Below, piece by piece: positions 4,266 through 49,450 of a stretch of DNA of 64,000 nucleotides (its first letter is position 1; every line of letters begins with the position of its first letter). The stretch is from Ophelia neglecta. Its lineage: Eukaryota. A model generated the notes under the pieces. The model had not been told where the DNA came from, ran no database searches, and saw nothing but the letters and a program-made list of their open reading frames with translations. Made by a program: the position numbers and the translations under genes. The stretch lies in the NCBI GenBank assembly GCA_965285935.1, contig OZ260661.1:41230001-41294000 (forward strand). Reading direction: 5' to 3'.

Positions 4266-6913
4266 TTCATTCAATTGCAAACTATAACATGCTTCCAAAT
4301 GCCAGAAAACATTAATGACTGATGATGTTTACGTTGTCCCAATATGCCCCCGGAATGTCCCAATGTGCCCCAGAGTGCGGCCCATTTTTCGCTCCAAACA
4401 CATGTTATTCATTTTATCGTTATATTCAAACCACACCATCCCTTCCTGAGCAAGCATTTTACAGGCAAATGAACTAACTATGCTGATACTTAATTATGAG
4501 CTTTAGCCTAAAAAGTACAATATGCCATGAATTAAAGTATATGTTTTGTCCAAATAGTCCCCAATTTCTCCTACTTAAACTGCATTTCAGAAGTAAAACA
4601 TCGTCAAGCATGTACGTTTTTATAGATCAGATAAATATAAGGCAAAACGCATTTAACCTAGATGATATTGTAGGTCTGATGAGAAGGAGACTTTTAGGGA
4701 GTAGTATAGAGGTACCAAGGCTGGATGACTGAAATTCACACCAACTCCAGGATTAATATGCAACAAACGTTAGGCGCCATGAGCTATCGGTTATCCAGCG
4801 TATGTTTGTGTGTGGTAAGTCAGTCCATAATAAATAGCGATAAGTCAGGTCATACCTAGAATCAGGCAACTTCTAACATCTTTACTTGTCAATGAGGCAC
4901 GCGACCCAATTAGTTAACAGTTGTCAATGGCGACACAGAGTCGGCGAGAGGCAGACGAGAGTATCATCCGGGGCAGACAGGTCCCGCAAACACTCCCGCG
5001 AGAAAACCCGTCACCTCCTTCAGGCAGACGAGAGCAGGAGGACGGATTCTCACTTCTGGAAGGCTCATGTTGGCAGCAGTTATAATGTAAAACGTTAAAG
5101 CTACCCATGTGTAAGTTAAAATGAAAGCAAATGTTCAATTTTAGTAAATAAAGGCACTCTCAGTAATGTGAGCTACCGGGGTGTGCCAGTAAGATTCTGC
5201 TCAGTATTACAGTTAATCTACAATATTATATAATCGTATAAGAAACTTGATGTTCTAGTTTGCTAAGGCTATAGTTGGAAACTCTGCCTGGTAGAAAAAC
5301 TAATTTAACAATCTCCTAACATTTACCGATGTCAAGATGCAGTGCAAGTATCAACATATTAATACTTTGATTGCGTTAGACTTTAATGCCATCTGAATCT
5401 AGAGTGCTTCGGTTTACTGGGGCAACTGTGGGTAGTCCAGCTTTGTAAGAGTACATTCATGATCATGCCGGTTAGACTCTTGGTGCCAGAGAGCGCATCC
5501 CAGCCCAGAATTGTGTCTCCAAGTATTCACTTCTTTACAAATCAATTGCCATGTTTCGGCTCATGGGTTGAATGGTTATGACAGGAAACGCCAATGTTTT
5601 TGATACTTTAGTAATTGCTTCTCCCGCCCGGAATGCTTTGAAATGATCTTACGAGAAGAGACATCACTTGGTGGTCTGGTGAGAGGCGAGATAACTCCGG
5701 GTCAACTGAGAATGGCCCATCATACAACCATACGTACTATACTAAAAATAATTGTAAAAAGTTGTTTTTGCGCGTTATAAACCTAGGCTGCTGAAAAAAA
5801 GATAATCAAATATGTAAAAAGAACCACTTCAATATACCGGTAAACGATCTGTTAAATACTAAATACATTTTCTCTGACTTCACTAGCGTGTCTCATCAGG
5901 TTGGTGCATAACCTATCATTAAGTTTATTAACATTATAATGGTGATTCTAACTTGCCATAGGAATTACTCTAAAGGAGAATGTGGCCAAGTTCCAAATCG
6001 ATCCTGGATCGTACGTACTTCGTTTACTCAAGACCGACCTCAGGTTTAAATGTGAATCGACAAAATCAAGTGGGCAACTTGAACTGTACTAATTTTCGTA
6101 GGACTCTTCTCAAGCAGTCAGCAGCGTTTAGACAAATGTGATAAATGCGAACAGGCAGCTCGTTTCGATTGATTATAGTGTTACAGCTCATGGAGTTCCC
6201 TTTGAAGAGATTTCAGCAACTGTTAGTACCGAGTGTTTCGTTTCGGCATTAATTGGGAAGGCGCCATGTTCACGTGTCTGATATCTTCTTTCAGACGAGC
6301 AAAAGTATGTACTGAAATTTTGTAAATAAGTTTAGAATTGAGCTGTTCTGAATATGTACAGGCGTTCATATATTTGGATGCAACGGAAATGTTAAGTTAA
6401 CACTAGGAAATTTAAAAAAGATCCCTGTAGGTCTCAAACGGCTAAGTTTATTCTACATTTCTCTCATTTAACACTACTGACAAATGGCATGCCATTCAAC
6501 TGGGTTTGTAACTTTCTATTCAAGAATTGTTGATTAATTTGCAGACATGAAGCCTCGATTAAGGATTTCTTGTTTTTAAGGTCGCATGCAATTTAATGAA
6601 GGGGATTAATTTTCCGGGGTAATTTTTCAGAACTAATCTGTATCAACATGCAAATAAATCTAACTTGCTCAATGAAGAGCATATACCGTGGTCTTGTAGT
6701 AGTTTCCATGCTTTATTATTCTGAAGAGAGCGTGGCAACAAATTTGAGCACTGACAATGAGTGCCGCCATGCCATGAAGCGTTGATCGTCTGCTTCTCAA
6801 TGAAGCCTAATTGGATCAGAGAGGAATTCTCCCTATCTACCCGAACATGGGCGCAAAACACACAAAAGGCGACAGTAATTGGCCCCACCGCTCATGAATC
6901 TTCAAGCCGGGAT

Positions 6914-7169
6914 GACACCCAATTAAGCTCAATTATGTTCAAGTCATGTCTTTTTGGCCTCATTATTGCACGGTGTGTACTTCACGGAATTACCTCATCG
7001 TTTGGCGAGCACAGATAACATTATTAACGGGATTACTCGTCCAAATGGCAAGTCAACCCTAAAATAAGAGATAAAAAGTGCAGGGTTGCCACGACGATTA
7101 TGGTAGTCGCCATCTTGAAAAATCGCCCCGTCTTGACGCTTATTGGCTATTAATTATGATTAAGCAGAC
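6914..7169. promoter_or_regulatory. putative enhancer, copy A of a paralogous non-coding pair
   Basis: Shares caattaagctcaattatgt, gataacattattaac, cctaaaataagagataaaaa, cgattat, cttgaaaaat and gattaRgcRgac with 18622-18876 at constant offset. Rich in TAAT and GATA cores. Confidence 0.65.
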
Positions 7170-10100
7170 CACGATTGGCATTTAGTTTCACAAACGAGCT
7201 GACTATTAGTCAGTTGAACGAGGTTGTTGAAGTTACCCCGCTATCTCTACCATATTAGGATGGAAAACCCCTGATTGGTGGGGCATTAGGCTAGACAACT
7301 TGCTTCCTAATTGGCTTGTCGATGATGTGACCAGGTTTTAAAGTGATTCTGTCACAGCCTTTCTCTGAACACTATTTGTTTTCTATAAAAACTCCCATTC
7401 TGCATTTTCTTCATGCCACCGACTCTTGGGGGTTTGATCCACTGGTATCAGATACAGTTCAAATTATAAATGGCTAGACATAAGCGAAATACAAAATCCA
7501 AATGTCATGCAATCGGTGAAACGTCGAGGGACATCTGAGAATAGGATTATAGGCCTAGTCCAGATCTCGTTAAGTACTGTTTTACACGGGATCCTAACCT
7601 CTCCTCTTCCTCCTACGTATATTTGTTTGGCCAAAAGTAAATTATTCTAGACAGACAGACTACAGAATAGTATGACATCGTGCACTAAAACGGCAACAAA
7701 GAGTTTCAAGGTGATGCGAGACACATTGTTTGCAGGTTCTCGGGCACGCTGTCTCGGATTTTTACATGTTTTTTAATGGCATTGCAGTAAGCAATAACCT
7801 GGTCTTGATTGTTAAATATTTTTCTTCTCAGTAACGCTGCCTCTGTTCGCTTTCTGCCTCTTGGCACTTCAACATTTTGTTTGTCATTTTAGGTATTATT
7901 TCTATCATCAAGTATACTTACAATATGGACATATATTTATGTACTCCGATGTACTGTAGTCATGTTGTTTACCTGTGACGTTCTCGATTTGATGTTACCT
8001 TTTTGAACAGCAACTGCGTTAGCAGAGTTTTCCGATACGTACGAATGTCGTGCAGAACCAGAGGAGGAAATGATATTAATATTCATACTCGGAGCTAGCA
8101 GCTGATGCTTAATTCAATATATTCTAACGGGAAACATGAAGGCATGCAAAGCTAGAGGTAACAGTAGTTGAAGATCACCCAGATGCTACAAATGTTCGCC
8201 TGTTAAGGAATTGTGTGCTTTCCCTATAGTCAAGCGTCATTACATTAAATAGTCAAGCAACTTGTTGTGAAAGTGGAATAACATTATGATAAATAATACC
8301 TCAGTTCATCACCGTGGGTCATAGTTCATAAAAAAGTTCCACTGAGATGAAAGGACATTGCTTTCAACCAGTTCTTCACGCAGTCAAAGAAGAGAGAAAA
8401 CTGCGAGGAAACCGCCCCCTGCCCACGTGTTTTTGGTTACTCGGCCCAGAGAGCAAACGGTTAGTAGTCAAGATAACTTCTGTCTTGATGATTGAGCACA
8501 AATTACGTTATCGGGACTCAATTAGGAGGCCATTTGCTCGCACTCCTCACTCGGTGTTAGCTTTTCATGCCACAAATCCTGGTTTTACTTTGCTGATGAC
8601 AGATCCACTTGATAGAGGCCAACTTCGCCTGTCTCCGACGCAGACTGCCCTCAACAGCAATCGACTCAGTTTCGCTAAGAATCAGGATCAACAGACGGCT
8701 TCGGACCGGAGAATTCGACTTATCCCATCCGTTTTCTGCAAAGATGGAAAGAATGTAAATATAGCTCCACCACTTCTATTCCATGGGGGTTCATTTATAA
8801 TTGGTTCCATATTTCAGTTGGAAGAGGGACGGATTACATAAAGTTTTATATCAATCATAATTTACCGATGACTCGTTTTAACTTAGTTAGGAATGTCAGC
8901 CCCTGTAAATGTGGAACAATTGGAACAAATGTGGGTCTAATGACATCACATCAGTGATGATTAGCATAGAAAGTTTGAAGGGGCGACTTTTGTATATAGC
9001 ATAAATTTAATCTTCACTGAAGGTCGAAAGAACATACATGTATTAATTCGATGGGTCTTTATTTTAATGCTTTAAACTTCATAACAACCATTTAAACACT
9101 GACCAATTAATTGTAACATAATGTGGACTATCAGCAGAGAGCGTAACCAAAAATGGCGTTAACGAAGTTTAGCAATTACCAGTTAAACGGGAGATAAAGG
9201 GATTTATGTTCGACTTTTATGAATGTTAGCAAGGTAAAGGGAATAATATATGGACAAGGTAACGTTTAGGAGACGATTTAATGATGGAAGATAGAATACT
9301 CGTGAAGCAATTTGTGCAGATTAAAAGTGATAAAATATTACCATTGTACATGTACAGGTTTTTGACATTTATTGTAGTAGGGATACTCACCTTACCACAG
9401 CTGATGGGTCTTGCGAAAAAAATGACCCATAGATTCTATGTGTGGGGGCTGACTCCAAAATGGTAAATACTATTTTTAAACACAGTTATGGAACTTTGGA
9501 CTTTTCGGCATGAGTCACATGGTAAATCTGTCTGCGCACCATCGATCTTTCATCCAAGTCGCAATGTTAAGACAGTATAATTGAATATATATCAATTCGG
9601 TTGGACTGTATTATGTTGTGGTGACACTTAAAACAAGCCGCTGTTATGAAACAACCTATATTGTGATCTGTTCATTTTAATGAGGCTGACGTATATGTCC
9701 AAACACGAGAAGTGGAATAGAATACCTATCTTCTCCCCACCTGTAATCAATCCTTGTCAACTGTTATGGCCATTCGGCTTTTAATTTGTGTTTCTTGCAC
9801 CGCCCACAGAGAAAGTTTTGAATAAAACATCAAAGATCCCAGTTCTTTGAGCAGCCAAGCGACAACCGAAAGCAATTCTATCTATTTGTAAAATACATTT
9901 CTAAGTAAACAGGGTCTTCTTGCCTCGTGTTCTAATTGATTTAAATTAGAGGTTTGGTTGACATCGATTAACAGAGTAGCTGATTTTATCCTCTCAGCTC
10001 ACGGCGCCTGTCAACAGGTTTAATACTAACAACGGGTACACCTTTAATAACAGGTCCCTCTAATAGAATACACAGTCCTACCTGTAAACAGTATCAAGTT

Positions 10101-13100
10101 TGCCAGAGGCATCATTGTCGCACTCCTTGACATCTATTAGTATTGTGCGGATCTTTTGTCATGAAATGGATGTTGATTATTTTTTTTAAAGGTTGGTTTC
10201 CTGTGACAATATCAAAGACATCGATACTGCTTCAAGATTCAATTAAAAGTATACCATACATTTATCTTATCTAACTAGTAAAACGGTCATTTATTGTACC
10301 TCATCATTTTTTATCGTGGTTGGATCGCTATAATTTTTGTCACTGCATGGTTAAGAAAAAGGCTATCTCGGGTCAAAATGTCACATTAAAGTTATACAAC
10401 ATCTGAATTGTATAATATCTATAGGTAGCTATGACACATTGCAGTAACGAAAGAACAGCAGCAGCCATGGGTAGTAACCCCCAAAAGCCTTGACTTCCTC
10501 TGACAAAATGTACACCTTGACAAACAAATTAACAACGGTCAAATTTGTGTTATTATAGCGGTCTAAAAAGACTTAATGAAAGTGAGTAATAAATAATTAT
10601 TCAGATACATTTCTTGAACAGCTATTTAACCTATAACACAATTTAATCAATCTCAATTTAAACAGAAATAAGGTCTTTCAGATTCAATTACAAAAAAAGC
10701 TTTTCATTCGATTGTTTGCTGCCATTTATCATTGTATTTGTTCCCCTTTTCTGAGCAAGTTGTGACTTTAACTTGAATATCTGATACACGTATTAAGGGA
10801 TGTCGGCCTACAAATAAACACTTGAGCGATCTGATTTTGAAAAGAAACACATTGCGCCTCCTTTCATGTGGGTGTAGTGTCGTGGGCATCAAGGTGCCGC
10901 CTTCTCTGGGACATGTCCTAGCTGAGTGATCAAAGCGCGCGGACGGGCCGTGTCCTATCAGCAGACGATCTCAAGGCGGACCAGTCGGAGGCGGTTTCTA
11001 TTACACCGCTCAGATGTTAGTTACCCGCCGTGACAAGTTTGGTCATCCTTCGATATGGGAAGTTGTTCCGTTGCCAAGAAAAGTGAACTACTTGATTGAA
11101 GATGACATCCGAGTAAAAATTGGTAGTTAATAGAAAACGAACATGGTATTATATGCTGTATAGACATATCAGTGTCTGTCAATGACATGGGAATGAGGCA
11201 AAGAATTACAAGAAATGCGCTCGAAAATTAATGATCACACGAGAAAATATCTTTGTATTGATTCTCGTCATTTATTAGATATTTGGATCTTTTAACATTA
11301 AGTAAAACTATCTTATAATTTTTTACCATTTTAATTCCGTTTTCATTGCTGGTCTTTTGCGGTTGCGTCCTTATTTTAGTATTACTACGAAACTGAGAAG
11401 TTAAAAACAATCGCAATTTTGACTATGACAGGCAGGTGGCGCCTCTGTTGCAGTCAAGCGTGTCCTTCAAACCAGTCTAAGTCCTAATCTTAGTAACTCT
11501 TTTTCGGTCACATTTCCTTACACATTCAGTTAAGTAACAGTTAATCTGGCTGTCTTAACAATTGTCTAGGACACTGACAGAAAAGAAGACGCATGCATAT
11601 GTTGTATTTACCACAGGGTACATCTATATGTGCCATCATGATCATATTATAAGAAAACATAAGTATTCAGAGATCAGAGAACTGAGCTCCAGTTAGAGAA
11701 CGTGTTCTTGCTTATTTAGAGTTCATGTTTAACAATAGTTCAAGATACCATTTGCAGGTATGATTGTGTGAAGCATGATTTGAAAAGATATCCGTTTGAT
11801 GATTACTATGTGAGGGCTATGTGACCTCAGCAATCGGCAAAATAGGATATCTGCATTGAAATAGGCAGTAATAAGTACTGGCTAGCGAGCCGTCCTCGGC
11901 CTTTCAATTGGCCCGTATGTCCTTAAAGAAGCAACCATTAATAAAGACCCATCTAAATTCATATAAATGTAAAACTAGCAAGTCAGTGAAGTAAATGAAC
12001 ATGTTGCTGGCGAGAGCGACAGCCCCCAGATGGAGGCGAATTATCTTCCTGCCAAAAGGATGGTGTTTATCACTTGTAGAAAACTTTTGAATGTCTTTAT
12101 TTTTGCCGACTGATTATAGGGTGCAAAGTGCTAAACCACATGTTGTACGCTACGAATTCTGTTGGCAATCTTCACTAGGCGTATGCGGGCACTATTAAAA
12201 TTTCATCTATGAATACAGCATTGACTTCTCCGACCCAACTGACTGTCTTGCTGAACAATGATAAATACAAATACAGTATCTACCCTACAATTATCTGTTG
12301 CAAATGAAAACATCATTCCAAGCCTTCATTTCAGCCTTTACGGGTAACCGGGCATTTGATTGAATCAAATTATACGTTATTCGTGTGAGTAATATACAAT
12401 ATGTCTTGATGTGGAGGATATCTATAATTAAAATAGAGAGAAGATGCGGGCACTTACAGAAAATATCTCGGCCACCTTTTGATTGGGATGAAATTATGAT
12501 ATTCAAAGAAATGTGCAATTGTGTTTATTTTTCCTGCAAACGTCAGCCCATGAAGGCTCCATGACCTTTCCTTCGCAATAAGCGCCGATATTGTTTATGA
12601 TCATTCAAGACACAAACTAGTTTCATAATAGATAGATGTTGTCACAAAGGTATCAGTTTATGAAAACGGCACAAAAATACTTTAATTAATTGGGAAATTT
12701 TGACCCGTCACTGTAACTTCTCATCGAAATGAGGGTTGTCAGATATGAAGCACACATCCTGCTACTGTAGCAGCATTGTTAACCCGCGTTAGGTAGTTTG
12801 TTGTTGTACACACATCTACTGGTACTGGAACTATCTTAGCTATACACCAGAATGCTGGCTGTACATTATGTAATTAGGACTATATAGGCTGGCAAAGGTC
12901 TAAATATTATCGTTGTACTAGGCCTACTTTGAAGGTTCAATTAGGCCTATAGTAAAATTATAAATAAACGCTGCAGAAGTTGTAATCAAGTAAGTTTTTC
13001 TCTAAATTTGGGTTCGTGTTCTTTATATAAAGTTGAAAGGTTGCTTCAGTTTAAAAACATTAAATACTACTTTTATTACTCTATTCACCTATAGGCCCTA

Positions 13101-14799
13101 TATGTATTTTATGTCAGGGCTTGGGACTAACGCATGCTAGACTACAAACTCGACCTATAGTTACAGGGTAACCATTTCTTGGATAATCATAAGATGTACC
13201 AGTATAGCTCCTACGCAACTCTAAAAAGCATTTGACAAACAGGTCGTAATAAAAGGTTTATCATAAAAGCTACTTGCATAGACTAGAAGAAAGCTCCTGT
13301 AAAGTTGGCGACTTTGCAGAGGATATATACCGCAAGGGATGTTAGTCGGTCGTTCATCACCAATTTTCCGGTGATTGGAGAGCAGGGAGAGGGCGCGGAG
13401 GATCAAAGTCCGGGTCTGTCACCCCTGACCCCTCCGGCTTCTCCCACTCTGAAGTCGTCTGTCTTCTCCGATAACGGCAGGCAGGAGGCCTCGGGTTATA
13501 TCAGACCTCTGTATGGAGCCTGACAGCAGAACCGGCCAATTCCTTGCAGACCTTATATAAATTTAAGTTTGGGTACATATTGTGATTATATCACATATCA
13601 TATCTAATCTGTTTTATATAGAACGCATGAAATATCGATCACAAGCAGTCAGTCAAATAAAATATGGTCCCATATCTGTCCACGTGTGTCTGAAAATACT
13701 GTCCGTGCTGAAGGCGATTTATCTGCAAAAATGATTCGTCTTTAACAAGTTTGCTTGTGTATGGTAAATAGTGTGTTAACCTCAAACAGCTACCACCAAC
13801 ATATCTAAACCGGTAAGTCATATAAACCTTTTTTGTTTTTCAGGTTCATTTCTGACTGTTACTTCTAATTCAAAAAAAGTTCAGTCCGGCTGGAGGGTTT
13901 AAAATCCTACATACGGTTTGAAAGTTGAGGAATAAACCTTAATTGAACAAAGAGCTCTTGGCGGCAAAATAAAAGACAATGACGATTCTTGCATCATATG
14001 AGCCTACTGATTGATGTTTGTCATAGGGAGTGCAAAATCAGCCATATAAACCCTTTTTGAAAGTTTAGTCAGAAAAATCCATTTATAATTTGTTTAATAA
14101 TTCTAAATAACGCGGTCAATATGCTCCTACATCTGAAAAAGACCCAAATATCACAATTTTAGCATTATCTCCATGGAGGGGGAATCGATATTATCTTGTC
14201 ATTTGGCTCATAAGTTTGACATATTGGGAATTAAAGAAAATACCTTAAGCTTAAATTCGCACTAAGGCACGCTCCCAAGACAGACGGATTACCACGACAT
14301 ATAATTATATAGGGAGAGCACACTGTGGTTATGCTTGGCCTAAAACTCATCACGCTTATGTATACTAGGAGGCATATGATTCATAAATCGTCTGCTAAGG
14401 TCGATTGGCCGCTGTAGGTTTGCTCAGCTGACCTTCAGTGACTAAAAACGTGTTGATATCGCATTTTACTTAACATGTTTATCATAATATAGGGCTAGAG
14501 TAGACCTAGGTATATCGACCTAAACTATCAAAAAGCTAAGTGAGATCTTGTAAACTTTCAAGCATTGTGAAAACCGAGTTCAATAAAAGGTAACATCCAG
14601 ACTGCATTGTTTTAATAATTAAACAATGGTACAATGGAACTCAGTAGGTGTTAGGCTATACTCATGCCTGTACTACTGCCAGCTTTCTTCTCATTTTCCT
14701 GAGGCATTCCTAGAAACTTGGTTGTCTTATAGACCTAAGTGAACTTTTCTTAATTGAAAGTATTTTAGTGATGATAATGAGCCAATCAACTATGGGCAA

Positions 14800-17410
14800 A
14801 ACTCTTTAACTCTTCAACTCAATGGGTTAAACGTTCCCATTCCTGACTCATTAACTCCTAAGCTCAATGGGTTAAACGTTCCCATTCCTAACTCACTAAC
14901 TCCTAAACTCAATGGGTTAAACGTTCCCATTCCTAACTCACTAACTCCTAAACTCAATGGGTTAAACGCTCCCATTCCTAACTCATTAACTCCTAAGCTC
15001 AATGGGTTAAACGTTCCCATTCCTAACTCATTAACTCCTAAACTCAATGGGTTAAGTGCTCCCATTCATAACTCATTGACTCCTAAACTCAATGGGTTAA
15101 ACGTTCCCATTCCCAACTCATTGACTCCTAAACTCAATGGGTTAAAGGCTCCCATTCCTAACTCATTGACTCCTAAACTCAATGGGTTAAACGCTCCCAT
15201 TCCTAGCTCATTGACTCCTAAACTCAATGGGTTAAACGCTCCCATTCCTAGCTCATTGACTCCTAAACTCAATGGGTTAAGCGCTCCCATTCATAACTCA
15301 TTGACTCCTAAACTCAATTTAAACGTTCCCATTCCTAACTCATTGACTCCTAAACTCAATGGGTTAAAGGCTCCCATTCCTAACTCATTGACTCCTAGAC
15401 TCAATGGGTTAAACGCTCCCATTCCTAGCTCATTGACTCCTAAACTCAATGGGTTAAACGTTCCCATTCCAAACTCATTAACTCCTAAACTCAATGGGTT
15501 AAACGTTCCCATTCCTAACTCATTAACTCCTAAACTCAATGGGTTAAACGCTCCCATTCCTAACTCATTAACTCCTAAGCTCAATGGGTTAAACGCTCCC
15601 ATTCCTAACTCATTAACTCCTAAGCTCAATGGGTTAAACGCTCCTATTCCTAACTCATTAACTCCTAAACTCAATGGGTTAAACGTTCCCATTCCTAACT
15701 CATTGACTCCTAAACTCAATGGGTTAAACGCCCCCATTCCTAACTCATTGACTCCTAAACTCAATGGGTTAAACGCTCCCATTCCTAACTCATTAACTCC
15801 TAAGCTCAATGGGTTAAACGTTCCCATTCCTAACTCATTGACTCCTAAGCTCAATGGGTTAAACGCTCCCATTCCAAACTCATTGACTCCTAAACTCAAT
15901 GGGTTAAACGCTCCCATTCGTAGCTCATTGACTCCTAAACTCAATGGGTTAAACGTTCCCATTCCTAACTCATTAACTCCTAAACTCAATGGGTTAAACG
16001 CTCCCATTCCAAACTCATTGACTCCTAAACTCAATGGGTTAAACGTTCCCATTCCTAACTCATTAACTCCTAAACTCAATGGGTTAAACGCTCCCATTCC
16101 TCACTCATTGACTCCTAAACTCAATGGGTTAAACGTTCCCATTCCTAACTCATTGACTCCTTAACTCAATGGGTTAAACACTCCCATTCCTAACTCATTG
16201 ACTTCTAAACTCAATGGGTTAAACGCTCCCATTCCTAACTCATTGACTCCTTAGCTCAATGGGTTAAACGTTCCCATTCCTAACTCATTGACTCCTAAAC
16301 TCAATGGGTCAAACGTTCCCATTCCTAGCTCATTGACTCCTAAACTCAATGGGTTAAACGTTCCCATTCCTAACTCATTAACTCCTAAACTCATTGGGTT
16401 AAACGTTCCCATTCCTAACTCATTAACTCCTAAACTCAATGGGTTAAACGCTCACATTCCTAACTCATTGACTCCTAAGCTCAATGGGTTAAACGTTCCC
16501 GTTCCTAACTCATTGACTCCTAAACTCAATGGGTTAAACGTTCCCATTCCTAGCTCATTGACCCCTAAACTCAATGGGTTAAACGTTCCCATTCCTAACT
16601 CATTAACTCCTAAAATCATTGGGTTAAACGTTCCCATTCCTAACTCATTAACTCCTAAACTCAATGGGTTAAACGCTCCCATTCCTAACTCATTGACTCC
16701 TAAACTCAATGGGTTAAACGCTCCCACTCCTAACTCATTGACTCCTAAACTCAATGGGTTAAACGTTCCCATTCCTAGCTCATTGACTCCTAAACTCAAT
16801 GGGTTAAACGCCCCCATTCCTAACTCATTAACTCCTCAACTCATTGTATAAAACGCCCCCATTCCTAACTAACAAACTCCTCAACTCATTGTGTTAAACG
16901 CCCCCATTCCAAACTCCCAAACTCCTCAACTCATGGCGTTAAACGCCTCTATTCCTAACTCCTCAAATCATTGTGTTAAACGGACCCATTCCTAAATCAT
17001 TAACTCTTAACCTCATTCGCTTTTATGTTCCCATTCTTAACTCGTTAACAACTCAAATCATTGGCTTAAACGCTCACATTCCCAAATTATTAACTCCTCA
17101 ACCAACTCACTGGGTTAAACGCTCCTATTCCTAACTCGACAACTCTTCAACTCAGTGGGTTAACCGCTACCATTCCTAACTTGATAAATATTCAACTCAT
17201 TGGGTTAAACGCTCACATTCTTAAATCATTAACTCCTCAACTCATTGGGTTAAACGCTACCATTCCCAACTTATTAGCCCTGCAACTCATTAGGTTGACC
17301 GCTCCCATACCTGACACATTAGCTCCTGAACTCATTGGCTTAAATGCTCCCGTTTCTTACTCACTTACTCCTGATCTCATTGGGTTTAAAACTCCCATAT
17401 TTAACTCACT
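14800..17410. repeat. 45-bp tandem satellite (~45 homogeneous copies plus ~12 degenerate copies)
   Basis: Unit cctaaactcaatgggttaaacgYtcccattcctaactcattRact, near-identical from 14810 to 16850 and decaying to ~17410. It explains all repetitive ORFs in the track between 14814 and 16851. Confidence 0.97.
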
Positions 17411-17820
17411 AACGGCCCACCGCGACGAAACTCCCGCGGCGTTACTTTCACGGCGTCAATTTCGCGGATTGTGTATATGGCAAGAAGTCATGGCCCTACC
17501 GCGGTGGCGCTACCTCGGCAATCTTCCGCTGCGACTTACCGCGGCTTTCTTCAGGGTCGGACCTTATCGCCGTGACCATACCGGACAGCCCCTCGCAACG
17601 CGGCGCCCCTACCGCCGCGGCCCAACCGCGTGGCGGCATTCCCCCGACCGCCCTACCGCAGCGGCCTTACCGCGGCGGCATTCTCGCAGCGGGCCTACTA
17701 TATTTCATGAAAATTATCGACGTAGGCCGGTGAAAGATTCTATAATTATGAAAGTCCTTTGGCATGTGAATCGCGGCCGTCATTTTAAAAATCGCCGACA
17801 ATTGTCCGATTGCTATAAGG
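17411..17820. repeat. CpG-rich degenerate short-period repeat (cctaccgcggc-like)
   Basis: Repeated taccgcgg/ccgcggc/ccctaccgc motifs, very GC-rich, directly abutting the satellite. Confidence 0.55.
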
Positions 17821-18621
17821 ATGAATGAATCGTGGTTTTAAGTGTCGGATGCAAGTAGAACGTTATGCTATATATATATATATCGATTTGTTGTACTTGA
17901 TAAAAATGTACAGTTCGTCTCCTGTATGTCCTCTTAGCCCTCGTATACGCCGTATCTGGGGCTAGTGGCTAAGATAGCGTTCACCATTTGATACAATACA
18001 ATAATTTTATTTGCTAATACCTAGTATACAAAGCTTTAAGCTACCTCTATACACAAAACTTTCAATGAATAGTAAATATATTTTAACCAACTGGTCTTAA
18101 ACTGAGTACCCCCTATACACATTTCTAATTTCTAATTTAAAATATTAATATTATTTAATGCTGTGTGATGACGAGGGTTTATAATACATGACCCGCCCTT
18201 TCACGGACATAAAAGAATTAGATTACCACAAATAATTTTTAAAGAATTTGAGTCGTATTTTTTACTGAGCGGGGGGGGGGGGTTAAGCTTATCTTTTTGT
18301 CCTTCATTTTTGTCACCGGTTTCCAGCTAGGCCTTATTGGCACTGTGCTGCTGGGGGTAGACGCTATAGTCAGTGTGAGCTGGGTTCGGCCAAGCAGCAG
18401 ACTTTCCCAAATGAATATCATCCACGTCTGAAACTCATTACAATCTCAAAAGGACCAGTGATGGATGCATTCCATTTAGGTCGATCGTCCTCCTGTTTAG
18501 GAGCAGACGATGAATTTCTGAGCTGACCTTAAGAAGATTGGTATAATCCGGACCTAAATGGCTGCTCAATAGCTCGGGAAAGAGCAATTTTCTCCGGCCC
18601 AAGTAAAAAACCAACAAGATC

Positions 18622-18876
18622 GACACTCAATTAAGCTCAATTATGTCCGTGTCATGGTGGGTACATCCATTACCCGTGTGTAGGCATCGAACGAAATTAG
18701 TCTCCAGTTTGGTACGGGGCGATAACATTATTAACAAGACGCAAACTTTAAGTAGTTATTCATGCCTAAAATAAGAGATAAAAACTGAATGGTCCTCTTG
18801 GCGATTATTCAGTCAGAAGGCTTGAAAAATTGTTTTCAATCGTCGCCTCATCGTCATCAATAACGATTAGGCGGAC
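18622..18876. promoter_or_regulatory. putative enhancer, copy B of a paralogous non-coding pair
   Basis: Same blocks as 6914-7169, in the same order and orientation, offset 11707-11708 bp. Confidence 0.65.
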
Positions 18877-19978
18877 GGGTGGTGGAGTGGGCTCAGTTAT
18901 TAATCTGACAAATCGCCAACAAATGACCCCAGAGTCAATTATAGCGGGGCTGAGCGCCCGATAGACACCCCGACGTCAAGATAGGCCTACACGCTCACAA
19001 GCAGACGAACGCCTGTCATCGCTTGCTACGGTTTGCCGACAAGTAATCCCTTGACGACCGAATGATTGTCGTAATCTGTGTAGAAAAAATTACCGTGATC
19101 TTGTGACGAATTACGGCTTTGACCATGGACGAGTGGCCAGCGAGTAGACAAGCGTCTGTAGGCGTGCCAGTTGAATACTTAGTGGCTCTTGATCTGGTAA
19201 GGTTTGGGAAGAAATAGAGCCACCTCATTTTTGCAGTAATTTCAGAAATGACTCAAAATCGTTGTTATGCAATGACTCTTCATTCTCAGTGGACTTTCAA
19301 ATCATCTTAGTCACATCCTTCTGAACACACCTTTCAGCATTAAAAGGGCCCCTTTAAATCGAGACTCAGGTTTATTTCATAGTATGAAGGCTTTAAATAT
19401 CTTGAAAGTTGTTTATCATTCGGAAAATTCAACAGAGATTATGTTGAATAGAAATCATAGGCCTATAGTAGTATTGTTTTAAAGAAGTGGTTTGTTCACT
19501 TTCGAATTCACTTAGACATTTTGATCACGACAATAAGGAACTAAACGCACTGCACATTGACAGTAAAACCAAATATACAGAGCAAATGGACTAGATTTGT
19601 GGCCGCTATATATATATGGGCAGGCTGACGCGAAAAGTCTAGAGCCCGTCGTAGCACACTAATACAAAATCATAAGTGTGATAATATTCCCTAGAGCCAA
19701 TAGGCCTATTTTTCTAAATGAGGAAGTATCTTTTGACTTGTATGGTTCTTACCGAGATCTGTAACCTATACGTACACAGACCGTGTATATAATCCATATG
19801 TTGACGATTAACATTGCCCTAGGGCCTAGGCCTATATGACATCTTTCTGGGAAGAGCCACAAAGTAAAAGCAATATGTAATATATTTTAAATAAAAAAAA
19901 CACGAAATGTAAAACGTTCAAATCAGTTTTTATAGCCGTGTCTATATAAGCGTAATTACAGAGGTTATACGTCTGTGT

Positions 19979-20072
19979 CACAGGTGCTAGTGTCAATGTC
20001 AATGCTACCCACTGTGTATAAGAGCGCTCTTATACACAGTGGGTAGCATTGACATTGACACTAGCACCTGTG
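19979..20072. mobile_element. 94-bp perfectly palindromic MITE-like insertion with 8-bp TSD
   Basis: 47-bp arms are exactly complementary around agagc|gctct (20025/20026). Flanked by direct repeats gtctgtgt (19971-19978 and 20073-20080). Termini CA...TG. Confidence 0.8.
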
Positions 20073-29244: not shown

Positions 29245-30185
29245 TTCAGGACTTTTCCACCCAAAAAGTTCGTACCCGGACATTTCGTCCCCATCTTTGG
29301 CAATTAAAATAAATAAACTGCATTTAATTTTGATATCATATAGGTTCTATAGTCACATGCCGAGACCGAATGTGACGTCCCCCGTTAGGGATAAGTGACA
29401 TGAGTATGATGTGGGATCACATGTTCACATGTTGTGCCATCCGGACATAAAAGTCCTGGACATAATGGTCCTGGACATAATGGTCCCGAACAAAATGGTC
29501 GCGGACTTAGTGGTCCCGGACATAATGGTCCCAAATGAAAAGGCGAACATAATGGTCCCGTCAGCAAAAATTAAAAAAAAATCAAATATTAAATGAAAAT
29601 ACTTTTAATTGCTAATAACGAACAATCATATATAGAAGCCAGGAGGCTTTTTACTTCTTCCTCGCATTAACTTTTCCACATTGAAAAGATTGTAAGTTGG
29701 ATACATATTATATCAGATTAAACAATAAACATATTTTGACATCAACTCTAGGTACAATTGGATTCTTAGAATTATATAGGGTTTTATTCTTAAAATGTGC
29801 ATTAAAAATGAGTGCATATGTTTAAACCAATGTTTTAAAAATGTTATTAATAATTGCATAGGATTCGTTCATTTTCTACTTAACATGTTCTGCTTTAAGT
29901 CCACGAGACCATTATGTGCAACTTTTCACTGGGACCATTAAGTGCGGGACCGTTAGGTCCGGGACCATTTTGTCAGAAACCATTATGTCCGGGACCATTT
30001 TGTCCCGGATTCGTTCAAGATACATGACATGGGCAGAGAATGACATTTCATATTAACTAAGCTTAAGGTGACGTTCCGAATTGAAATACAAAACAGTTGG
30101 ACACGAAAAGTCCGGTTGCAAAGTCCCGGATAGGAAAAGCACTTGATAGGAATCTAATATCTAAAACTGGGTAGGAAACTCCACT
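29245..30185. mobile_element. foldback/MITE-type element with inverted arrays of 15-bp subrepeats, apparently nested
   Basis: Left array ccggacataatggtc x~7 (29440-29560), inverted right array gggaccattatgtcc x~6 (29905-30010), AT-rich spacer. An outer, more decayed pair is ggacttttcc/ccggacatttcgtccc (29245-29295) versus ggacacgaaaagtccgg/ggataggaaaag (30098-30185). Confidence 0.7.
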
Positions 30186-32520: not shown

Positions 32521-35500
32521 AGTTTCCTTGAACTTTGTTTTTTATACCCAGTGCTAATACTTGTGTTTCTTAAAGCTTGTCATACAGACATTATAATTGG
32601 TGACACGCTTACACATCTCTCCTACATCATCAGGGGATGAATCAACTTTATACAATAGTGGTCACGCTACTATTATACCCTATAGTCTAAGATCACTGTT
32701 CTCACTTCTTTGTGTGTCACAGCATATAACCGACATAGGACATTGATGAGGATTAAGTTATCTATAGGACGGTTTCAAGGTCATCCAGAAGGACAACACT
32801 CTTGCTCTTGCTTTTTTATTCTGAGTGGCCGGAAATGGTTTTTTTTGATGCGTGGCCATAGCGTTCACTTGAATGTCTTTGACAACCCAGGAAATTACTA
32901 GACACGTTTCTCTGTATAGTTTCAATTGCGAGAGAAATGAAAGTTTGAAAAATTGTAAGATTGAGTATATCCATTATTCCAATCCTTAGATACTGGGAAA
33001 TGAAACACAAAGACAATGGACTAGTTCAGGCACTTTGTTTTACAAAGTCATATTGCCAAAGCCATCATTTCTGTGAATTTATCACAGAATAAGATAAAGT
33101 TGACATTATCATTGAAAGAGAACAATGAAAAGATTACGTACATTTTGATACAAAAGTCATTACTCCAAACTTTCAGGTTATTCGGAATTGGTAGCATACT
33201 CCCTCAGTGTGGGGTGCAGTTTATTTTGAATACTTGTCTTTCTCTGTCATGTATGGGGTGTTCCTTGCTTGTTGTATGGTAGAGTCGACTAAGAAACTCG
33301 GCGAGTTGCGTGTTAAACCATGTTGCTGCATGCAACAGCACACCTAAACTGCCAAATGTGACTCATTAGGCCGTCTGAGTGCTTTATTTCTAATCTGGCT
33401 GAACGCACATTTATTAATTTCGTGTGAAATGGCCTGTACAACTGCCTTGCCTTGCCAATCATACCAACACCATCAAATGTATAATTTAAACCAAAGCAGT
33501 TGCTTGCCAAATAACACATCAAGCCGCCATTCTTTGTTCAGACGTGTAACAATCAAACCAAATATGTTATTTGATGTCATTTTGACACGTTCATATGGGT
33601 AATTTTCAACTCATTTTCCAACCAATGAATTTTAATTGAATTAAACAGTAGTGCATTATCATACTTTAAAGCTTCATACTTTTCAGGTGCAATATCAAAT
33701 GACCGGGTTGAGTTTGTGTTGCCGTCTGCTAATACATGGCTGGCCGTTGATGTACCAATTTACCACATATTTAGACATTAAGCATATTCATTTGGTTCTT
33801 AGGAGATTCGCAGCCCTCTAATCTACATATATTTGTGCAGTAAATGAGAATTAATGAACCATTACTGTTTACAGGGTGTGGAGGGCGAGCTCAGGAAGTC
33901 TGATGAAAGAGCAGGTGGGGGATCTTCATGTGTGTAAACTTTCGCTCGTCATCGATAAAACATGTCTGCTACTCACAAAAGCGGCCGAATTCAAAGCAAA
34001 TATTTTCATATCCGGTAAATGACCGCCATCCAGCCCTTAATGGGCATAATGTTAAATCGGCTACAAACAATCCTGTGTATATAGCTATACATGTTTCAAG
34101 ATGTCAAAAGCATTGCAAGTTTAATAGAGTTGCTTTTTTGAAATACACTGAACCTAAAATGGTGTCCTAAAAGTGTCCATCGTGATCTGTTTTCACAATT
34201 AAAATGGTCGAATTAAAAAGTATGACATGGTAAAGAAATTTAGGGAGATTTCATGCAATCAATTGCTTATATGATCACGTTTTTAATTAAATAAGGCAAG
34301 CTCGTCTTTTAAACGTGGTTGTGCCCTAACAAGCGATAGTTTGGACGTCAGTATATACAGTAATCACATTTGAATTGCGTTACAATTATTTATTATACCC
34401 GGGTATATAGAATATTTGCCAATGTTTTTTAAGATTAAATTGAAGTTCCAATAGTTTCCGTTGACTTGACATTTGAAGTGAACATAAAATATGGTAAGTC
34501 TACTGGGAACGCGGAACACTGAGTACTGCTGAACTGAAAGGTGATCATTTAGTCGCTAATAAATTTATTAAACTTTGATGTGTCCATAAAGTTGCATTGT
34601 GCTAAGGTGTTCACACGACCCCAGGCCTTTATATCTGATTAAAGATCACAGGTGTTACCTAATGGGGCCTAATCTCAAGCCTCCTGCTTCATTGCACCTT
34701 TACACATGAACGTGTAGAAATCTTGATAAAATAATGATAAATTATCGCCCAGTTCAATACCCTCAACCGTTAATCCCATGGTAAAAAACCGCCCGAAGGT
34801 TTTTTGACAAGGAGGGAATAAATTCTACGTTAAAAAATAAGGGTTGATAAGAATCACGCTATGAAAAAGTATGCAAGTTTAAAAATAACTTGATTTTCAG
34901 TTGATAAAATAGTAATAAAGACTTCAGAGTGAAAAGGTAACATCCAGTGTAATCATGTTCTTTGCAAGATTTTTCTTTGTGGCCTACCAAAATGCAATAT
35001 ATATCTGGAACTAAATGGCCAAACTGACATTCACTTGACTTGACAAAATTTGTTCTGATAGAGTTTTATGCAATTAACTAAGTTGACACATAGAAGCTTA
35101 ATGACAACTGAACAATATGCATATTAATCACAGGTTTGACACTTATTCAGGATAGTATAAGATTGTAAGGAAGATGCTAAGAGCACCCATATACTTTAAA
35201 AAGAAATGTTAGCGAACAAAACAGCAATTATAACTCGAAATGATGTTGGTTTCGTGTCAAGATTGAAACGTAGATAGACCGGCATCTGCTGAGTGATAAA
35301 TATCTACTCTCTGCTCTGTTGTTCTCTATGAAAATAATGCCACAATTTAGACCCTAATGATTGATAATTTGGTGACGTTTTGAAAAGATGGTTTGCAAGC
35401 TAGCCATGACCCTCTCTAAATTCAACACTTAGTAACAACACTTTCAGCAAGACTCATATATCTTCTACCGAGTTAGAATCTTGATTTTAGTATAAAGGAG

Positions 35501-40212: not shown

Positions 40213-40547
40213 TTAGAGGAGTTTCTTTTCGTCTTCATCCTCATCGTCGCTGCGAACAGCAACGGTGGAGTGGTTGTAGAGTCCCTGGGCCATCAGCTGG
40301 AGAGCCAGCACGTTCCTAACTCCGGTGGCCTTCTTCGCTTTTGCCCGTTTGTTTTGAAACCAAATCTTGATTTGGGATTCATTGAGATCGAGTTCTTTGG
40401 CGAGTTTGTGTCTCCTTTCCTCGGTGAGATATCTATTATCGTCAAATTCTTGTTTGAGGCGTCCTAATTGTTCATTACTAAATGCAGTCCGAGGTCTTTT
40501 CTCTTCCTGCTTTCTAGGCTTTTTCTCCATCTTTCTTGATCTAGGGC
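40213..40547 (-). CDS. en: engrailed-family homeobox gene, coding exon 2 (EH3, homeodomain, EH5, stop)
   Basis: Acceptor tcttctatttcag|GC CCT AGA (AG at 40549-40548) joins exon 1 in frame as SSG-PRSRK. Homeodomain [59 protein letters not shown] has Q50; EH5 is '[18 protein letters not shown]'; TAA at 40215-40213. 745+335 nt = 360 codons including stop. Confidence 0.97.
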
Positions 40548-43500
40548 CTGAAATAGAAGAAATATTGATTAAAGACCCCATTTGTTAAATAAAAAAATAG
40601 GTTCTGCATGGGTCTAACTTTATACATGGCATAACTGCACATGGTTCGTCGATCAACTCCTAAGGGCTGTTTATTGTATCTACAGTCGTAATATTTGCTG
40701 AACAAATTGCACATGCAGTGTTGTTTTCTTTTTGAAGTTATCGCCAGTCTGTATTTTACATTCGAAGAAACACCTTCTTTTCTAACATTTGGCCCCCACC
40801 CACAGTAGGAATCCCCATCTAACACGACCGTGTGGCTCTCTAACAGAGAGTTATGACGTGTCTTGACCTCAGTGTCAGTTTGCTCAGAACGATGGAACCG
40901 TTCGGATAGTTGTTAATCGCCGGAGGGCCTCTCCGGTCATTAATCTTCTCAGCTGCCCCGAGCAACTGTTGCCTGATGAGAGCAAGCTCATAACAAAGTA
41001 CGAAAATATCCCGCAGCCTTGCAATTATAATATCACTATTAATTAGGTCCGCCGTGTTAATTACAGAGGTCCGTAAGTATGTATGTCCACGAACATAATA
41101 GGCAATCCGCTCTTTAGTAAACAGGAAAACAAGCGATGAGCCGCTTTCCAAACAAGTAAACATGTACATGTCGGCCACGAGGCAGGTTATCTTCTGGGCA
41201 GCGCCTTTTGGCGGTAGCGGTACATCACTTTGTCAATAGCAGTGCAACCGAATAGCCCTGAAGGAATTAGAAAAGGATAATCCCATCTGACTAGGGTGGC
41301 TGGATTAAAGAAACCCGAGAAGATAGTTTAGCGCCTGTATAATTGGCAATGAAGCGTAGATAATTGAGAGCTAATTGCAGAGGTCGGCGACTGAAACATA
41401 GACGAACAACTGACGTTTGGCTTCTCGGAATTCCAGAGGGAATTGGCGAATCACCCTGATATCTCACAGCTTGGCGACCAAAGCTTTGAGCCTTCGCCTC
41501 ACTAACTGATAGGAAATTCCTGCTTGCCTTCTAGGCTGATGTATACCGTCGTACTCGAAAGTAGTTTGCCAAACCGCCATATTTCAAATTTTAGAAAGGG
41601 TGGCAAAATATCCCTTACGTGATAAGTAGTCAGTTTTTTTAATTTCTATAGGCCTATGTTAGTAAAATTTAATTAAATACTCGCCACGCTAAAAACTGAA
41701 TTGCTTGCTTGGTCTCGTAACAAAACTGCGTTAGTCAACGCGCAAAACTCCTCAGTGTTAAGGTTCATATTTATCGGTCGTTAATAGATGTAGCCAAAAA
41801 GAGCAGCCACTATGGTTTTAGTATCAATATAGAACATCTGTTGCATTGCAAGCACGACTAATTTACGAAAAAGAGAAAGAAAAATCATTGTTTTCAGCCA
41901 ACGATTAAAGAGACCAACAGCTGAAAGCCTCAATAAGCAATAAATCAGTCCGCGCTGGTAAAGATAGAACAGGACGGTAAACTGTTTTAACCCTCGGACA
42001 CGTGACGCGTCTTCGCGTCGTCTGCAAGACATATAATGAGAAGATTTGAAAAGTGGTCTCCATACACCTGAAGAACCAATCAGATTCCTATAACAGTGAC
42101 GACATCTATGCCAGGCATGTTGCATATTATTTCACTGACAATCAGTCGATTTCTGCACGTTTGTCAGAGTTTTCATCGAGTTGGTGGTTTGTAAAAGATG
42201 GTTTTCGCCATGTTTTTTGTGCCCTTTTGTGAAACTCAAGTGCAACACAAGTGCTGTACTTGATTCAAACCTGGTCTTATTCTGTTTAAGACCTGATGTA
42301 GTTTTCACTAGTTCGGCCCTTTTTCTATGAACATATAAATCAGTTTTAATTGCAAGAAATAGCTTATTCACATTTCACCAAGGGAGCGTGATTGCAATAC
42401 TAAAGTTGTTCTGCTTTAACGTAGCTGCATGGTGCAAATTTTAAAGTCATTGTACGTAAAAAATATTTAGATTTTCCCTTCCACCTTTTGAATTTGAACA
42501 TTTACCTTTCTCTTTCGCAGGCGGCTTGGTAATAACTGGAATTTACATTGTATAACTATATATTTAAACCCATCATGATGTTGTACACACATGTACCAAT
42601 TTTTTAAACATCCAAAGTAGATCTACCATTCAGAGGCCAGGATTAACGGTGAGTTTGCGGTAAAATGACAGATGATAGCGCAAAGCACAGGAGAACGCAC
42701 AATAACAGCATGTGCCTATACTTCTAAATGTGCGAACTTCTATAGCACAAATGTTTGTTATACTCAAATGTGATCATGCGTTGTGATGTATTAAAAAGCC
42801 TTGCTATAATTAGTCAAACACGTCAATGAAAAAAGAAAATTAACTCTTTCTTTACAGATTATCGTCGGAATCTGTAACGTTGGTAACGACGAACAACACG
42901 TGGGTGTCCCCACGGGGTGCGCAACATAATATTCTATGTATATACATGGGGCAGAAACTTAACCGAGGCAGCCTGCGTCCAGACCCGCTTGTTACAGTTT
43001 GGCAATGTGACTGGGGACAACTTTTAATAGTCAGTGTCAATCTATGGAAATAAGGTCATGAAAAGAAGGAATTTGGTTACCGTCCCAGCAAATTCAAATA
43101 GCTATGAGAAAGGGTGGAAAGTTAGCATACACGCACACAGCTCCCATAATGTGATCTAATTTATTTTATTTATCAAAATTTATTTAGACTGGATATTTAT
43201 CAGCTTATGGGGGTCCAAATATATCATTTTGTGACTTTTAGAAACATGGAAAAGGTAACACAAGCATGTTTAATTTCGCTGATAAATAAAAAGAATACTT
43301 ATTAAACTTATTGGAATGGTAGGCATAAAGGCAAAAACACACTCGTTTTAATAATCTGTGGCGCGGCAGACGACACAAATAGACCGTATACTCAGAACTG
43401 GACATAGCCTTCATTCCGGCAAAACGCTTTATCCACCAGTTCGTGTCGTCTGCCTGGCTATACACCCTCAACACAGATGGCGTTTTATTGCGTGTAGTTG

Positions 43501-46500: not shown

Positions 46501-48705
46501 AGATTATGACCATTTTATTTGGACTTAAAACGTTAGACTTTTGGCCTATAGGCCTTATGGTTTCGAGTCCAAAAATGAATAAAGTCCTAAAGCCACGGGC
46601 CTATAGGTCTACTTTCCATACGATTATATAGGCCGGCGGGTTGAGACGACAAAATGAAGTTGTTTTTTTAGTGTAAGCTGGAAAATCTGGCGCTTATGAT
46701 TTAACATAAGAAAACAACGATGGTTAATGAGAAAAGCAAAAATCGCGGGTTTTTGTTAATAAAATATTTTTTAGGCGAAACGTCCCTTGTTGTATGAGCA
46801 GTCTTTTATTAAATATAACAGTTTAACGGCATGCCAGATGTTATAAACTAACGTGCGAGTCACACCTGACGTTGTGAACAACGGCTTCAATCGTCTGCTG
46901 CTCAAATATATGGCTTCACTCGGAATGATTTATAGGCATTTGTGCGGTCAATATAGATTATGTAATCTTGATCAATTGACTTAATGAGACACACAAATAA
47001 ACTAACTATCACATAAGGCCAATGATGATGTCAAAGCCGATAAAATTTTAATTGGTAAAACTCGGTGTGTTTGTTTTCTCTTGTTTTACATCGAAAAATT
47101 ATGAATAAGCCCTAAAAAATCAATATGATCATAAGCTCTCACAAAACCTGGAAATGCTGTTAACTACAAACTTCGGGGGTCGTATTGTCACTGAAATTAA
47201 CAAAGGTAGGCCTGTGGTGCAGTCATCTATAATGTTTACGAATTAGTTCGGTCATAAATATTTTTTACGGAAATTAGCAAATGATGGACTTCAATATTGC
47301 GCACGCTTTTCTGCCAATCTGATATTCAAACCTAAATTATATTGTAAGTGGTAACATCTGGTATATAAAACATTATATGAAGACAAGATTTGTGGAACGG
47401 GTATAGGGTTGAAGGCAGCCGGGTAATTATATTATGTTCTTCATCAGTACCTAGGAGTTATTATACCTCGATGTGTTTATCTACAGAAATAGCACTATGC
47501 CTATATATTTATAGAGGAATTTTTGTTCATTAAATTGCTCATGTACCCACGGATGGTGTGATAAGCTTGGCAAAAAAGAAGGACATTTATTCTGGCCTTT
47601 CTGGCGTTAGACTTCATGGAAAACGGGGTTTCTTTGGACATAGGCGAGCTATTGCTGAAATTTTCAGAATACATGAATTTGAATCTGAGGCTACCAAAGA
47701 ATTCTTGACAAACTTTGGAAATATGTTTGGTTGGAGCTTACAAGTTTAACATGATCTGTTAATATCAATGATGTACAGGACTGCGCAATCTGTTAAATTT
47801 ACAGTATATTATTTTAACCAGTATTCTAGTTTTCTGTGAGTATAGTTCTGGACACTTTAATAAACTCTCCTGGCTGACGGAGATAGTCTAGATCTATGAT
47901 ATAATTTCGTCCCACGGGACAGTATCATATGTGAGGTATTCTTGTCTGTCTTATTTGATCCGATATGGGAGTGACTTTTAATCATTTGCCTATTGCACTT
48001 GTGCTTCAACTTAAAAATCATTTCTGATCCACATTTATTTATTTATAAAATGCATGCCTTCCTATCGTCCATGATTTCATTAAGCCAATCTGCAGATCAT
48101 ATTTAGTTCACCCTATAGACCGATTGCAATTCAAATAATATAGGCTTACGATGTGCATTTGATGACATTTATTATAAATGTTTGATCGATATATGTAGTA
48201 GTGTGTAAAAGAAGTAAGATCGTCTGCCTGAGTGTCATTTCTAATTGCCACATATATGATACATATCTTGTTAAATATCTGGCCCATGTTTCGGTCCCTG
48301 CACACTGCTGCCAATTATTATTGTCAGGTTTGATTTCTTAAAACAGGCCATCTGTGATTTATTCTCTAATATATTGATTACGCATAACTATTATGCATGG
48401 CAGAATTGTCATAATAGTTTATTGTTGAAAATTCCAAACATAAGCCCATTCATTTCGTCCCTGGATTGTAATTTCCTTGTTTGAACAAACCGAGGTATTG
48501 AACACAAAACAAGGTGAGCAAACCCGTCTTCGCAACTCCCTGGCAATACAGAATACAAACTATGGCGGGTATTTACAGGCCACTGGATTCATAAACCAGT
48601 CCCAGCCTTAGACATTTTTCAATTATCAATGATTTCAGTTTGTGTAAAGATTATTAGATGTTTCGACACTAAAACAAAGAATAAAAGGTGATAACTTACG
48701 CCTAC
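40548..48705 (-). other. en: engrailed intron (phase 1, 8158 bp with the proximal donor)
   Basis: GT...AG boundaries restore the EH2-EH3 reading frame. An alternative donor GTAAGT lies at 48699-48694. Confidence 0.88.
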
Positions 48706-49450
48706 CTGACGAGGGTCTATCTGAGTATCGGGTGCAGTAGACCCAGGCCGGCCAGAGCTGTTCCGGAGAAGGGGACTGACGTCCCGAGGAACTCGACTTG
48801 TTTTTGGCTATTCCCTCCAAATCCGGGTGTTTGGATGCGGGCCGTTTGCTCTTTGGTGAGGAGAGAGGGGAGCTGTCACTCGAGCTGACACTGGCCGTGC
48901 TGTTACATCGTCGCCGGTGGTCGATCTCGTACGAGGGCGACAAGTGACTTGGTCCTTGGTGGTGGCGATGAAAGTTTCGAGAATAACCTACCCGATGTAA
49001 CGAGTGTAAACTAAGACTTATGTCTCGGTCCTGAGATTTGAAAGCCGCGGAGGGCTTAACGTCCTCAAACGGTCTCCATGTACAGCCGTTTGTCCGACCA
49101 GGTTTTGTGTTTTTCACCCCGAATTCGGGTTTGAGAATGTCCTCGATGAGAAAGTTTGTGACACGGATGTCCTGCTCCTGAGGCGCCTGTTGGTGGTGGT
49201 TGACATTTGGTATCAGGGCTCCATTGTCGTGTTGTACTGCCTCAAGATGAAGATTTGGAGACGCCGCTGGAGAAGGGCCGTCCCCCTCCTCCGGAGATGG
49301 GGCCCGAATGTCCCCCGAGAGGTCCCTTGATGAGTCGGTCTCCATTTGCTCCTCCACTTCGTCAGTTACATTAATATTCTCGTCAGAGTCACTAAAATCG
49401 TCCATTTGTTCAATTTTGAGAGGAGCCGTTTCTTCAGTGTCAACAGCCAT
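48706..49450 (-). CDS. en: engrailed-family homeobox gene, coding exon 1 (MAVDTEE...EH1...EH2)
   Basis: Translation contains EH1 'VTNFLIEDILKPEFG' (49118-49162) and EH2 'LWPAWVYCTRYSDRPSSG'. The ATG at 49450 has a strong Kozak context (ACAATGG). The exon ends at TCAG|gtaggc (GT at 48705-48704), the conserved engrailed intron position. The ORF-track start at 49630 is a GTG; a weaker in-frame ATG lies at 49591. Confidence 0.93.

Follow-up and report, generated by a model that had tools for sequence, protein, structure and literature searches.

Two anciently duplicated non-coding elements, candidate developmental enhancers, between convergent engrailed paralogues of Ophelia neglecta

We analysed a stretch of 64,000 nucleotides from Ophelia neglecta (GenBank assembly GCA_965285935.1, contig OZ260661.1, positions 41,230,001 to 41,294,000, forward strand; hereafter the window), with the focus on two similar non-coding elements, copies A and B, that lie between two engrailed genes. 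The engrailed exons were searched one by one, and their coordinates were taken from open reading frames. One gene, en-R, lies within the window on the minus strand, and a whole-assembly search with the homeodomain exon revealed exactly one further engrailed gene, to the left of the window. The homeodomain exons of the two genes are 73% identical in protein. The genes are convergent (tail-to-tail) with their stop codons 42.3 kb apart, and both copies lie in between. An initial annotation, made from the letters alone, had placed the copies downstream of a single engrailed gene; en-R is indeed present, but the copies are actually flanked by two convergent paralogues. Copy A, the one distal to en-R, begins 9.0 kb away from the left gene's stop codon; copy B, at 20.7 kb from the left gene and 21.3 kb from the right one, sits about the middle of the 42-kb gap. 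In window coordinates unless stated otherwise, the copies and genes are as follows.

6603..7352, no strand assigned: full conserved non-coding island of copy A (758-bp blastn alignment to a second species, described below)
6914..7169, plus strand: core of copy A, the part in common with B (pairwise and four-way alignment)
18454..18972, no strand assigned: full conserved non-coding island of copy B (522-bp blastn alignment to the second species)
18622..18876, plus strand: core of copy B, the part in common with A (pairwise and four-way alignment)
40213..40581, minus strand: homeodomain exon of en-R (open-frame coordinates; stop codon 40213-40215)
48704..49450, minus strand: coding part of exon 1 of en-R, with EH1 and EH2 motifs
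contig 41225174-41227897 (L050:5174-7897), plus strand: left engrailed gene, intact-looking, 2.1 kb left of the window
L050:5174-6112 and L050:7565-7897, plus strand: exons of the left engrailed gene, exon 1 with EH1/EH2 motifs

The two cores had been described as sharing ten short blocks at an invariant distance. Direct reading and pairwise alignment found all ten blocks at those coordinates, in the same order and orientation, and the alignment reproduced the offset of 11708 through the second block and 11707 thereafter, with the single 1-nt gap falling between 6948 and 6960. Identity of A and B was 58% across the 271-column core, which included perfect runs of 20, 19, 15 and 10 nt; outside the blocks it was 34%, near random for the composition. 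Column shuffles showed that identity is clustered in blocks: 64 bases lay in runs of at least 9, a number reached by 0 of 20,000 shuffles, and a 20-nt run was reached in 15 of 20,000. The block-wise identity pattern is real and non-random. Beyond the core, the four-way alignment described below extended a weak paralogy to ~7215 in A and ~18925 in B, followed by a 15-nt indel.

The public protein closest to Engrailed exon 1 (51% identical) is encoded on a 76-kb ENA contig of a second species, the relative, which was explored through its called open reading frames. This contig carried both engrailed genes, likewise convergent, and both A and B, with order and strand preserved and a distance of 5.66 kb between them. 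The spacing from block 1 to block 7 in the relative was 138 nt in the distal copy, as in A, and 137 nt in the proximal copy, as in B; therefore both the duplication and the 1-bp indel are older than the species split. In the homeodomain exon, 78 of 100 residues but 3 of 28 four-fold degenerate sites were identical between the species. Neutral divergence from the relative is saturated, and A and B had already been duplicated when the two lineages parted. Of the engrailed interval of 40 kb, about 4.3 kb (about 10%) aligned to the relative. Copy A gave the top blastn score in the locus (758 bp, 83% identity) and copy B the second-best (522 bp, 83.5% identity), both above the homeobox exon in nucleotide identity (74%). 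No other non-coding island of the engrailed locus is conserved as well as A and B. Their cores were 87-89% identical between orthologues, and the four-way alignment grouped (A, A') and (B, B'). The search in relatives proposed by the initial annotation thus found both copies conserved in a second species. Between A and B, a 45-bp tandem satellite of ~55 copies occupies 14692-17200, and nothing in 12454-18454 aligned to the relative; these two features help to account for the difference in distance between A and B, 11.7 kb here against 5.7 kb in the relative.

Once the second species was aligned, four of the ten blocks were shorter than first described. Block 2 was invariant over 5 nt rather than 6, the invariant part of block 4 was AATTA only, the 15-mer block retained 14 nt, and the last block was reduced to GATTA. 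The longer blocks, in which "four copies" denotes A and B in the two species, are the following.

A 6914..6938, B 18622-18646, plus strand: block 1, two CAATTA sites 10 bp apart; 19 nt at 6920-6938 the same in all four copies
A 7014..7027, B 18721-18734, plus strand: block 6, a GATA-like site, then two overlapping ATTA cores; 14 nt invariant across the four copies
A 7058..7077, B 18765-18784, plus strand: block 7, A-rich 20 nt with an AGATAA site, invariant in the four copies
A 7114..7123, B 18821-18830, plus strand: block 9, 10 nt, invariant in the four copies

Columns outside the four-way invariant blocks were 81-82% identical between orthologues and 34% identical between paralogues. The linkers, first described as unrelated, are so between A and B, but they are not free, being conserved across species within each copy; therefore they are not neutral filler but copy-specific constrained sequence. 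This pattern suggests that, once duplicated, the modules A and B diverged around a common core of anchor sites, and that each then became fixed. Register was kept strictly. No base was gained or lost within the 271 columns in any of the four copies since the species split, and A and B came to differ in length by a single base over the time in which their linkers were wholly replaced. Order, orientation and spacing of the sites are thus invariant apart from one 1-bp indel between paralogues, with none among orthologues. With the neutral indel rates usual in animals taken as a yardstick, the near-absence of indels would argue for selection on register. The long purifying selection that had been proposed for both copies and their geometry is borne out, as both were kept despite saturated synonymous sites, the 1-bp spacing difference included. 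Variants were also called in contigs of the one sequenced sample. For the 5.9 kb of 4400-10300, 40 variants and 11 indels are listed, and none of those listed falls in 6685-7413, which covers most of island A.

The content of the invariant runs was dominated by a single motif. ATTA occurred 8 times within them against 0.57 expected (P ~1e-7), and TAAT did not occur (0). On the plus strand, the ratio of ATTA to TAAT was 11:1 in core A and 8:0 in core B. In the other conserved islands and in the window as a whole the two words were balanced, which confines the strand bias to the two cores. Of the six short blocks, four amount to hardly more than an ATTA core, and two GATA-like sites and the 20-nt A-rich block complete the set. 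The homeodomain-type and GATA content that had been recognised at first sight was therefore recovered, with ATTA cores dominating the blocks and two GATA-like sites also present. CAATTA and TAAT are core sites of Engrailed/Antennapedia-class homeodomains; with this knowledge, the ATTA array reads as a directional, fixed-register array of putative homeodomain sites. Input by Engrailed proteins, as auto- or cross-regulation, is plausible from these predicted sites. A further word had been noted to the left of each core, and it is present in both islands.

6786..6793, minus strand: GCAGACGA word in island A, conserved in the relative
18503..18510, plus strand: GCAGACGA word in island B, one mismatch in the relative

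The 8-mer GCAGACGA occurred 20 times in the window against 0.75 expected from shuffles (27-fold), always within the engrailed landscape, at sites spanning 4951 to 52637 (for example 6786, 18503, 19001, 43366, 43446 and 45200), and 5 times in 48 kb of the relative. A 13-nt word, TAATTGAATTAAA, composed of two homeodomain-type half sites, was found at 33634, 36436 and 61321, with a variant at 9930; it falls in several other conserved islands.

Both copies are non-coding and unique to the locus. In the 762-Mb assembly, the block 1 19-mer and the block 7 20-mer were found exactly twice each, at A and B. Matches with one or two mismatches were as frequent as for reversed control words, and no second block was found near any of them genome-wide. 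A sequence-only profile made from the four-way alignment of the core returned A and B at E ~1e-64 and the next match at E 0.46, with 150 of ~83,000 first-look candidates scored. The genome search that the initial annotation had called for thus gave two copies and not hundreds of dispersed ones, and a transposon or dispersed repeat family was ruled out on the copy number and on the control-level frequency of near-matches without other blocks. Among metagenome contigs, one scan with the 19-mer gave three matches, one of them in a contig labelled human-gut metagenome, none accompanied by another block and hence attributable to chance.

We considered several explanations other than regulatory function. 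That the similarity is functionless, being left by a decaying repeat, a transposon relic, a gene conversion product or relics of coding exons, is hardly credible. An 85-codon frame over A (6761-7015) is open in both species, but a protein search found for it no relative and no Pfam family. Every frame contains 9-19 stops over 700 nt, substitutions are spread evenly across the three codon positions without codon periodicity, and non-synonymous codon changes exceeded synonymous ones in the three open frames tested (18 to 7, 13 to 0 and 14 to 4). A coding exon or micro-exon was ruled out on these grounds, in keeping with the lack of a common reading frame noted initially. The two-copy count genome-wide and the 83-89% conservation of the copies where neutral sites are saturated likewise speak against functionless similarity. 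Gene conversion as the origin of the identical blocks was ruled out, because the blocks are only 5-20 nt long and the copy-specific linkers are conserved between orthologues, which leaves no conversion since the species split. It is also very improbable that the blocks belong to a conserved non-coding minus-strand transcript, an unannotated long non-coding RNA of which they would be an exon, a promoter or a processing signal, with block 7 as the 3' splice site. The minus strand of block 7 does resemble a pyrimidine tract with a terminal AG, without variation among the four copies, but for the splice acceptor suggested initially no conserved donor was found: the sole candidate GT, at the next common block, is missing from one of the four. 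Rfam gave no match for the element, and the RNAalifold consensus fold was negligible on both strands (-7.6 and -7.8 kcal/mol for 271 nt). Copy A was no more stable than shuffled sequence (z +1.0 for either strand), and copy B reached z -2.7 and -1.6 through hairpins absent from A. A structured RNA as the common feature was ruled out accordingly, and ATTA enrichment on a single strand is seen more typically in DNA that binds proteins.

Another explanation is architectural. A and B may be paired tethering or boundary elements, or Polycomb-type silencers, that partition or bridge the engrailed interval, with the direct orientation and fixed geometry reflecting orientation-specific pairing or the assembly of a chromatin complex. 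Two direct copies between convergent paralogues, one near the midpoint, fit such a role, as do the confinement of every conserved ATTA core to one strand, the presence of GCAGACGA in each island with its 27-fold enrichment across the locus, and a copy-specific GCCATCTT-type sequence beside block 9 of copy A, which we take to be YY1/Pho-like. We nevertheless regard an architectural role as unlikely. No known insulator or Polycomb motif set is common to both copies, the common sites resemble the usual homeodomain and GATA content of enhancers, and no sequence feature demands pairing. A more specific version, in which A and B, instead of being ordinary enhancers, form a homologous, orientation-matched pair recognising each other or a common multi-homeodomain complex, seems decidedly unlikely. 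Such a pair would organise the interval for coordinate or alternate regulation of both engrailed genes, and the register of eight ATTA cores would be a structural code for pairing or for filament-like cooperative binding. If this is true, orientation-specific pairing elements would have an invertebrate counterpart, recognised by sequence alone. We think it probable instead that A and B are anciently duplicated cis-regulatory modules, developmental enhancers most likely, in the gene-free interval flanked by the two convergent engrailed genes. Several points weigh against this conclusion. The enhancer assignment is based on sequence, by which enhancer, silencer, Polycomb-type and tethering functions are inseparable, and the transcription-factor assignment stands on short consensus cores. 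The cross-species support comes from one other species, the two-copy count by profile rests on 150 of ~83,000 candidates, and the depletion of polymorphism over island A is only suggestive, because 21 variants lie outside those listed. Within 10 kb on either side of engrailed in Pecten maximus and Solemya velum, no block was found, which is of little bearing, because the elements lie 7-21 kb from the genes. In Pecten maximus, a 19-nt exact match links the left edge of island A (6606-6624) with an engrailed intron (L052:11691-11709; blast E ~8e-4 for a comparison of small size); it is probably due to chance, as it is not conserved in the close relative.

If A and B are duplicated enhancers, the common core could serve as a platform with eight TAAT/ATTA homeodomain-type sites of the same strand in fixed register; it comprises the CAATTA pair one helical turn apart, the two GATA-like sites and the 20-nt A-rich block. 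Homeodomain proteins would bind this core cooperatively, and if the Engrailed proteins were among them, auto- or cross-regulation would result. The conserved copy-specific linkers would add distinct inputs, so that A and B may be partly different in activity. Copy A would probably serve chiefly the nearer left engrailed, and copy B, lying close to the midpoint, could act on one gene or on both. As to origin, the element may have been duplicated locally within the interval, before the species split and not together with the genes. Between the convergent genes, A and B are repeated in direct orientation, whereas inverted copies would be expected if a gene had been duplicated in inverted form along with its 3' flank, and this suggests that the element was duplicated locally. 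When 23 conserved islands were compared all against all, the A/B pair alone was recovered, which ruled out co-duplication of further non-coding islands, and between the two engrailed gene loci no non-coding similarity was found, the coding exons alone matching. With no other island duplicated and no such similarity of the loci, local duplication would be the simplest reading. The earlier idea that the copies are relics of a tandem engrailed duplication is not supported, as direct repeats between convergent genes do not fit simple co-duplication. That of a simple redundant shadow pair gave way as well, since the copy-specific conserved linkers indicate diverged modules.

The closest known counterparts are the duplicated conserved non-coding elements (dCNEs) of vertebrates, described in PMC2781166 (citing McEwen et al. 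2006) as paralogous non-coding pairs near paralogous developmental regulators, many of them enhancers. They mostly lie at separate loci made by whole-genome duplication. A and B resemble them as two paralogous copies, each conserved between distant species, beside paralogues of a developmental regulator. They differ in lying in cis, 11.7 kb apart within one invertebrate intergenic interval, and in a core held in strict register, with one 1-bp indel in ~255 bp and the linkers wholly replaced. Judged by sequence-level features, A and B count as dCNEs in every respect of the vertebrate definition (PMC2781166): they are non-coding, conserved beyond neutral expectation, present as two copies each with an orthologue, and located beside paralogous regulators. 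Tail-to-tail homeobox pairs are known from vertebrate Dlx1/2 and Dlx5/6 and from hexapod engrailed/invected, and enhancer sharing has been shown for the Dlx pairs and proposed for engrailed/invected (PMC3199776). The Ophelia neglecta locus is alike in having convergent homeobox paralogues with conserved regulatory-type DNA between their 3' ends, but the intergenic enhancers of those pairs are not reported as sequence duplicates within one interval. Shadow enhancers, reportedly described by Hong, Hendrix and Levine in 2008, are said to be defined by overlapping activity, usually without alignable sequence. Like them, A and B are two separate modules of one locus with overlapping predicted transcription-factor input, and their common site content would be compatible with a shadow pair; unlike them, their homology is demonstrable, and the copy-specific conserved linkers argue for divergence over redundancy. 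The interferon-beta enhanceosome has a fixed order, orientation and spacing of sites and no tolerance for indels. The sites of A and B are likewise fixed in all three respects, but their core is ~5 times longer, with sites parted by 5-50 bp of non-common sequence.

Few regulatory elements disclose their age and history through their sequence, and dCNEs belong to these few. The A/B pair offers a natural experiment on enhancer grammar, with the same anchors kept in register and the linkers replaced yet conserved. Ophelia neglecta has a tail-to-tail engrailed pair with a common 3' interval rich in conserved non-coding elements, as in engrailed/invected and Dlx, and this arrangement bears on the question of why convergent homeobox pairs recur in evolution. 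The engrailed pair probably arose by a duplication independent of that in hexapods, which belong to a different phylum.

Other observations were made on the engrailed genes and the repeats of the window. The intergenic open reading frames tested in the engrailed gap matched no Pfam family. The last 56 nt of exon 1, which cover the EH2/EH3 region (48701-48756 versus L050:6045-6100), were 93% identical between the engrailed paralogues and 87-89% identical across species, though synonymous sites elsewhere are saturated, which suggests nucleotide-level constraint or past gene conversion at the end of this exon. The intron of the left gene contains a 344-bp island (L050:7033-7375) that is 82% identical to the relative, a strong conserved non-coding element. 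A perfect 94-nt palindrome with 47-nt arms and no spacer lies at 19979-20072, 1.1 kb right of copy B, and may be a foldback element or an assembly artefact. Two 15-bp-periodic arrays at 29426-29545 and 29930-30009, ~400 bp apart, have 80-nt inverted arms that are 84% complementary, and they look like a small foldback-type repeat.

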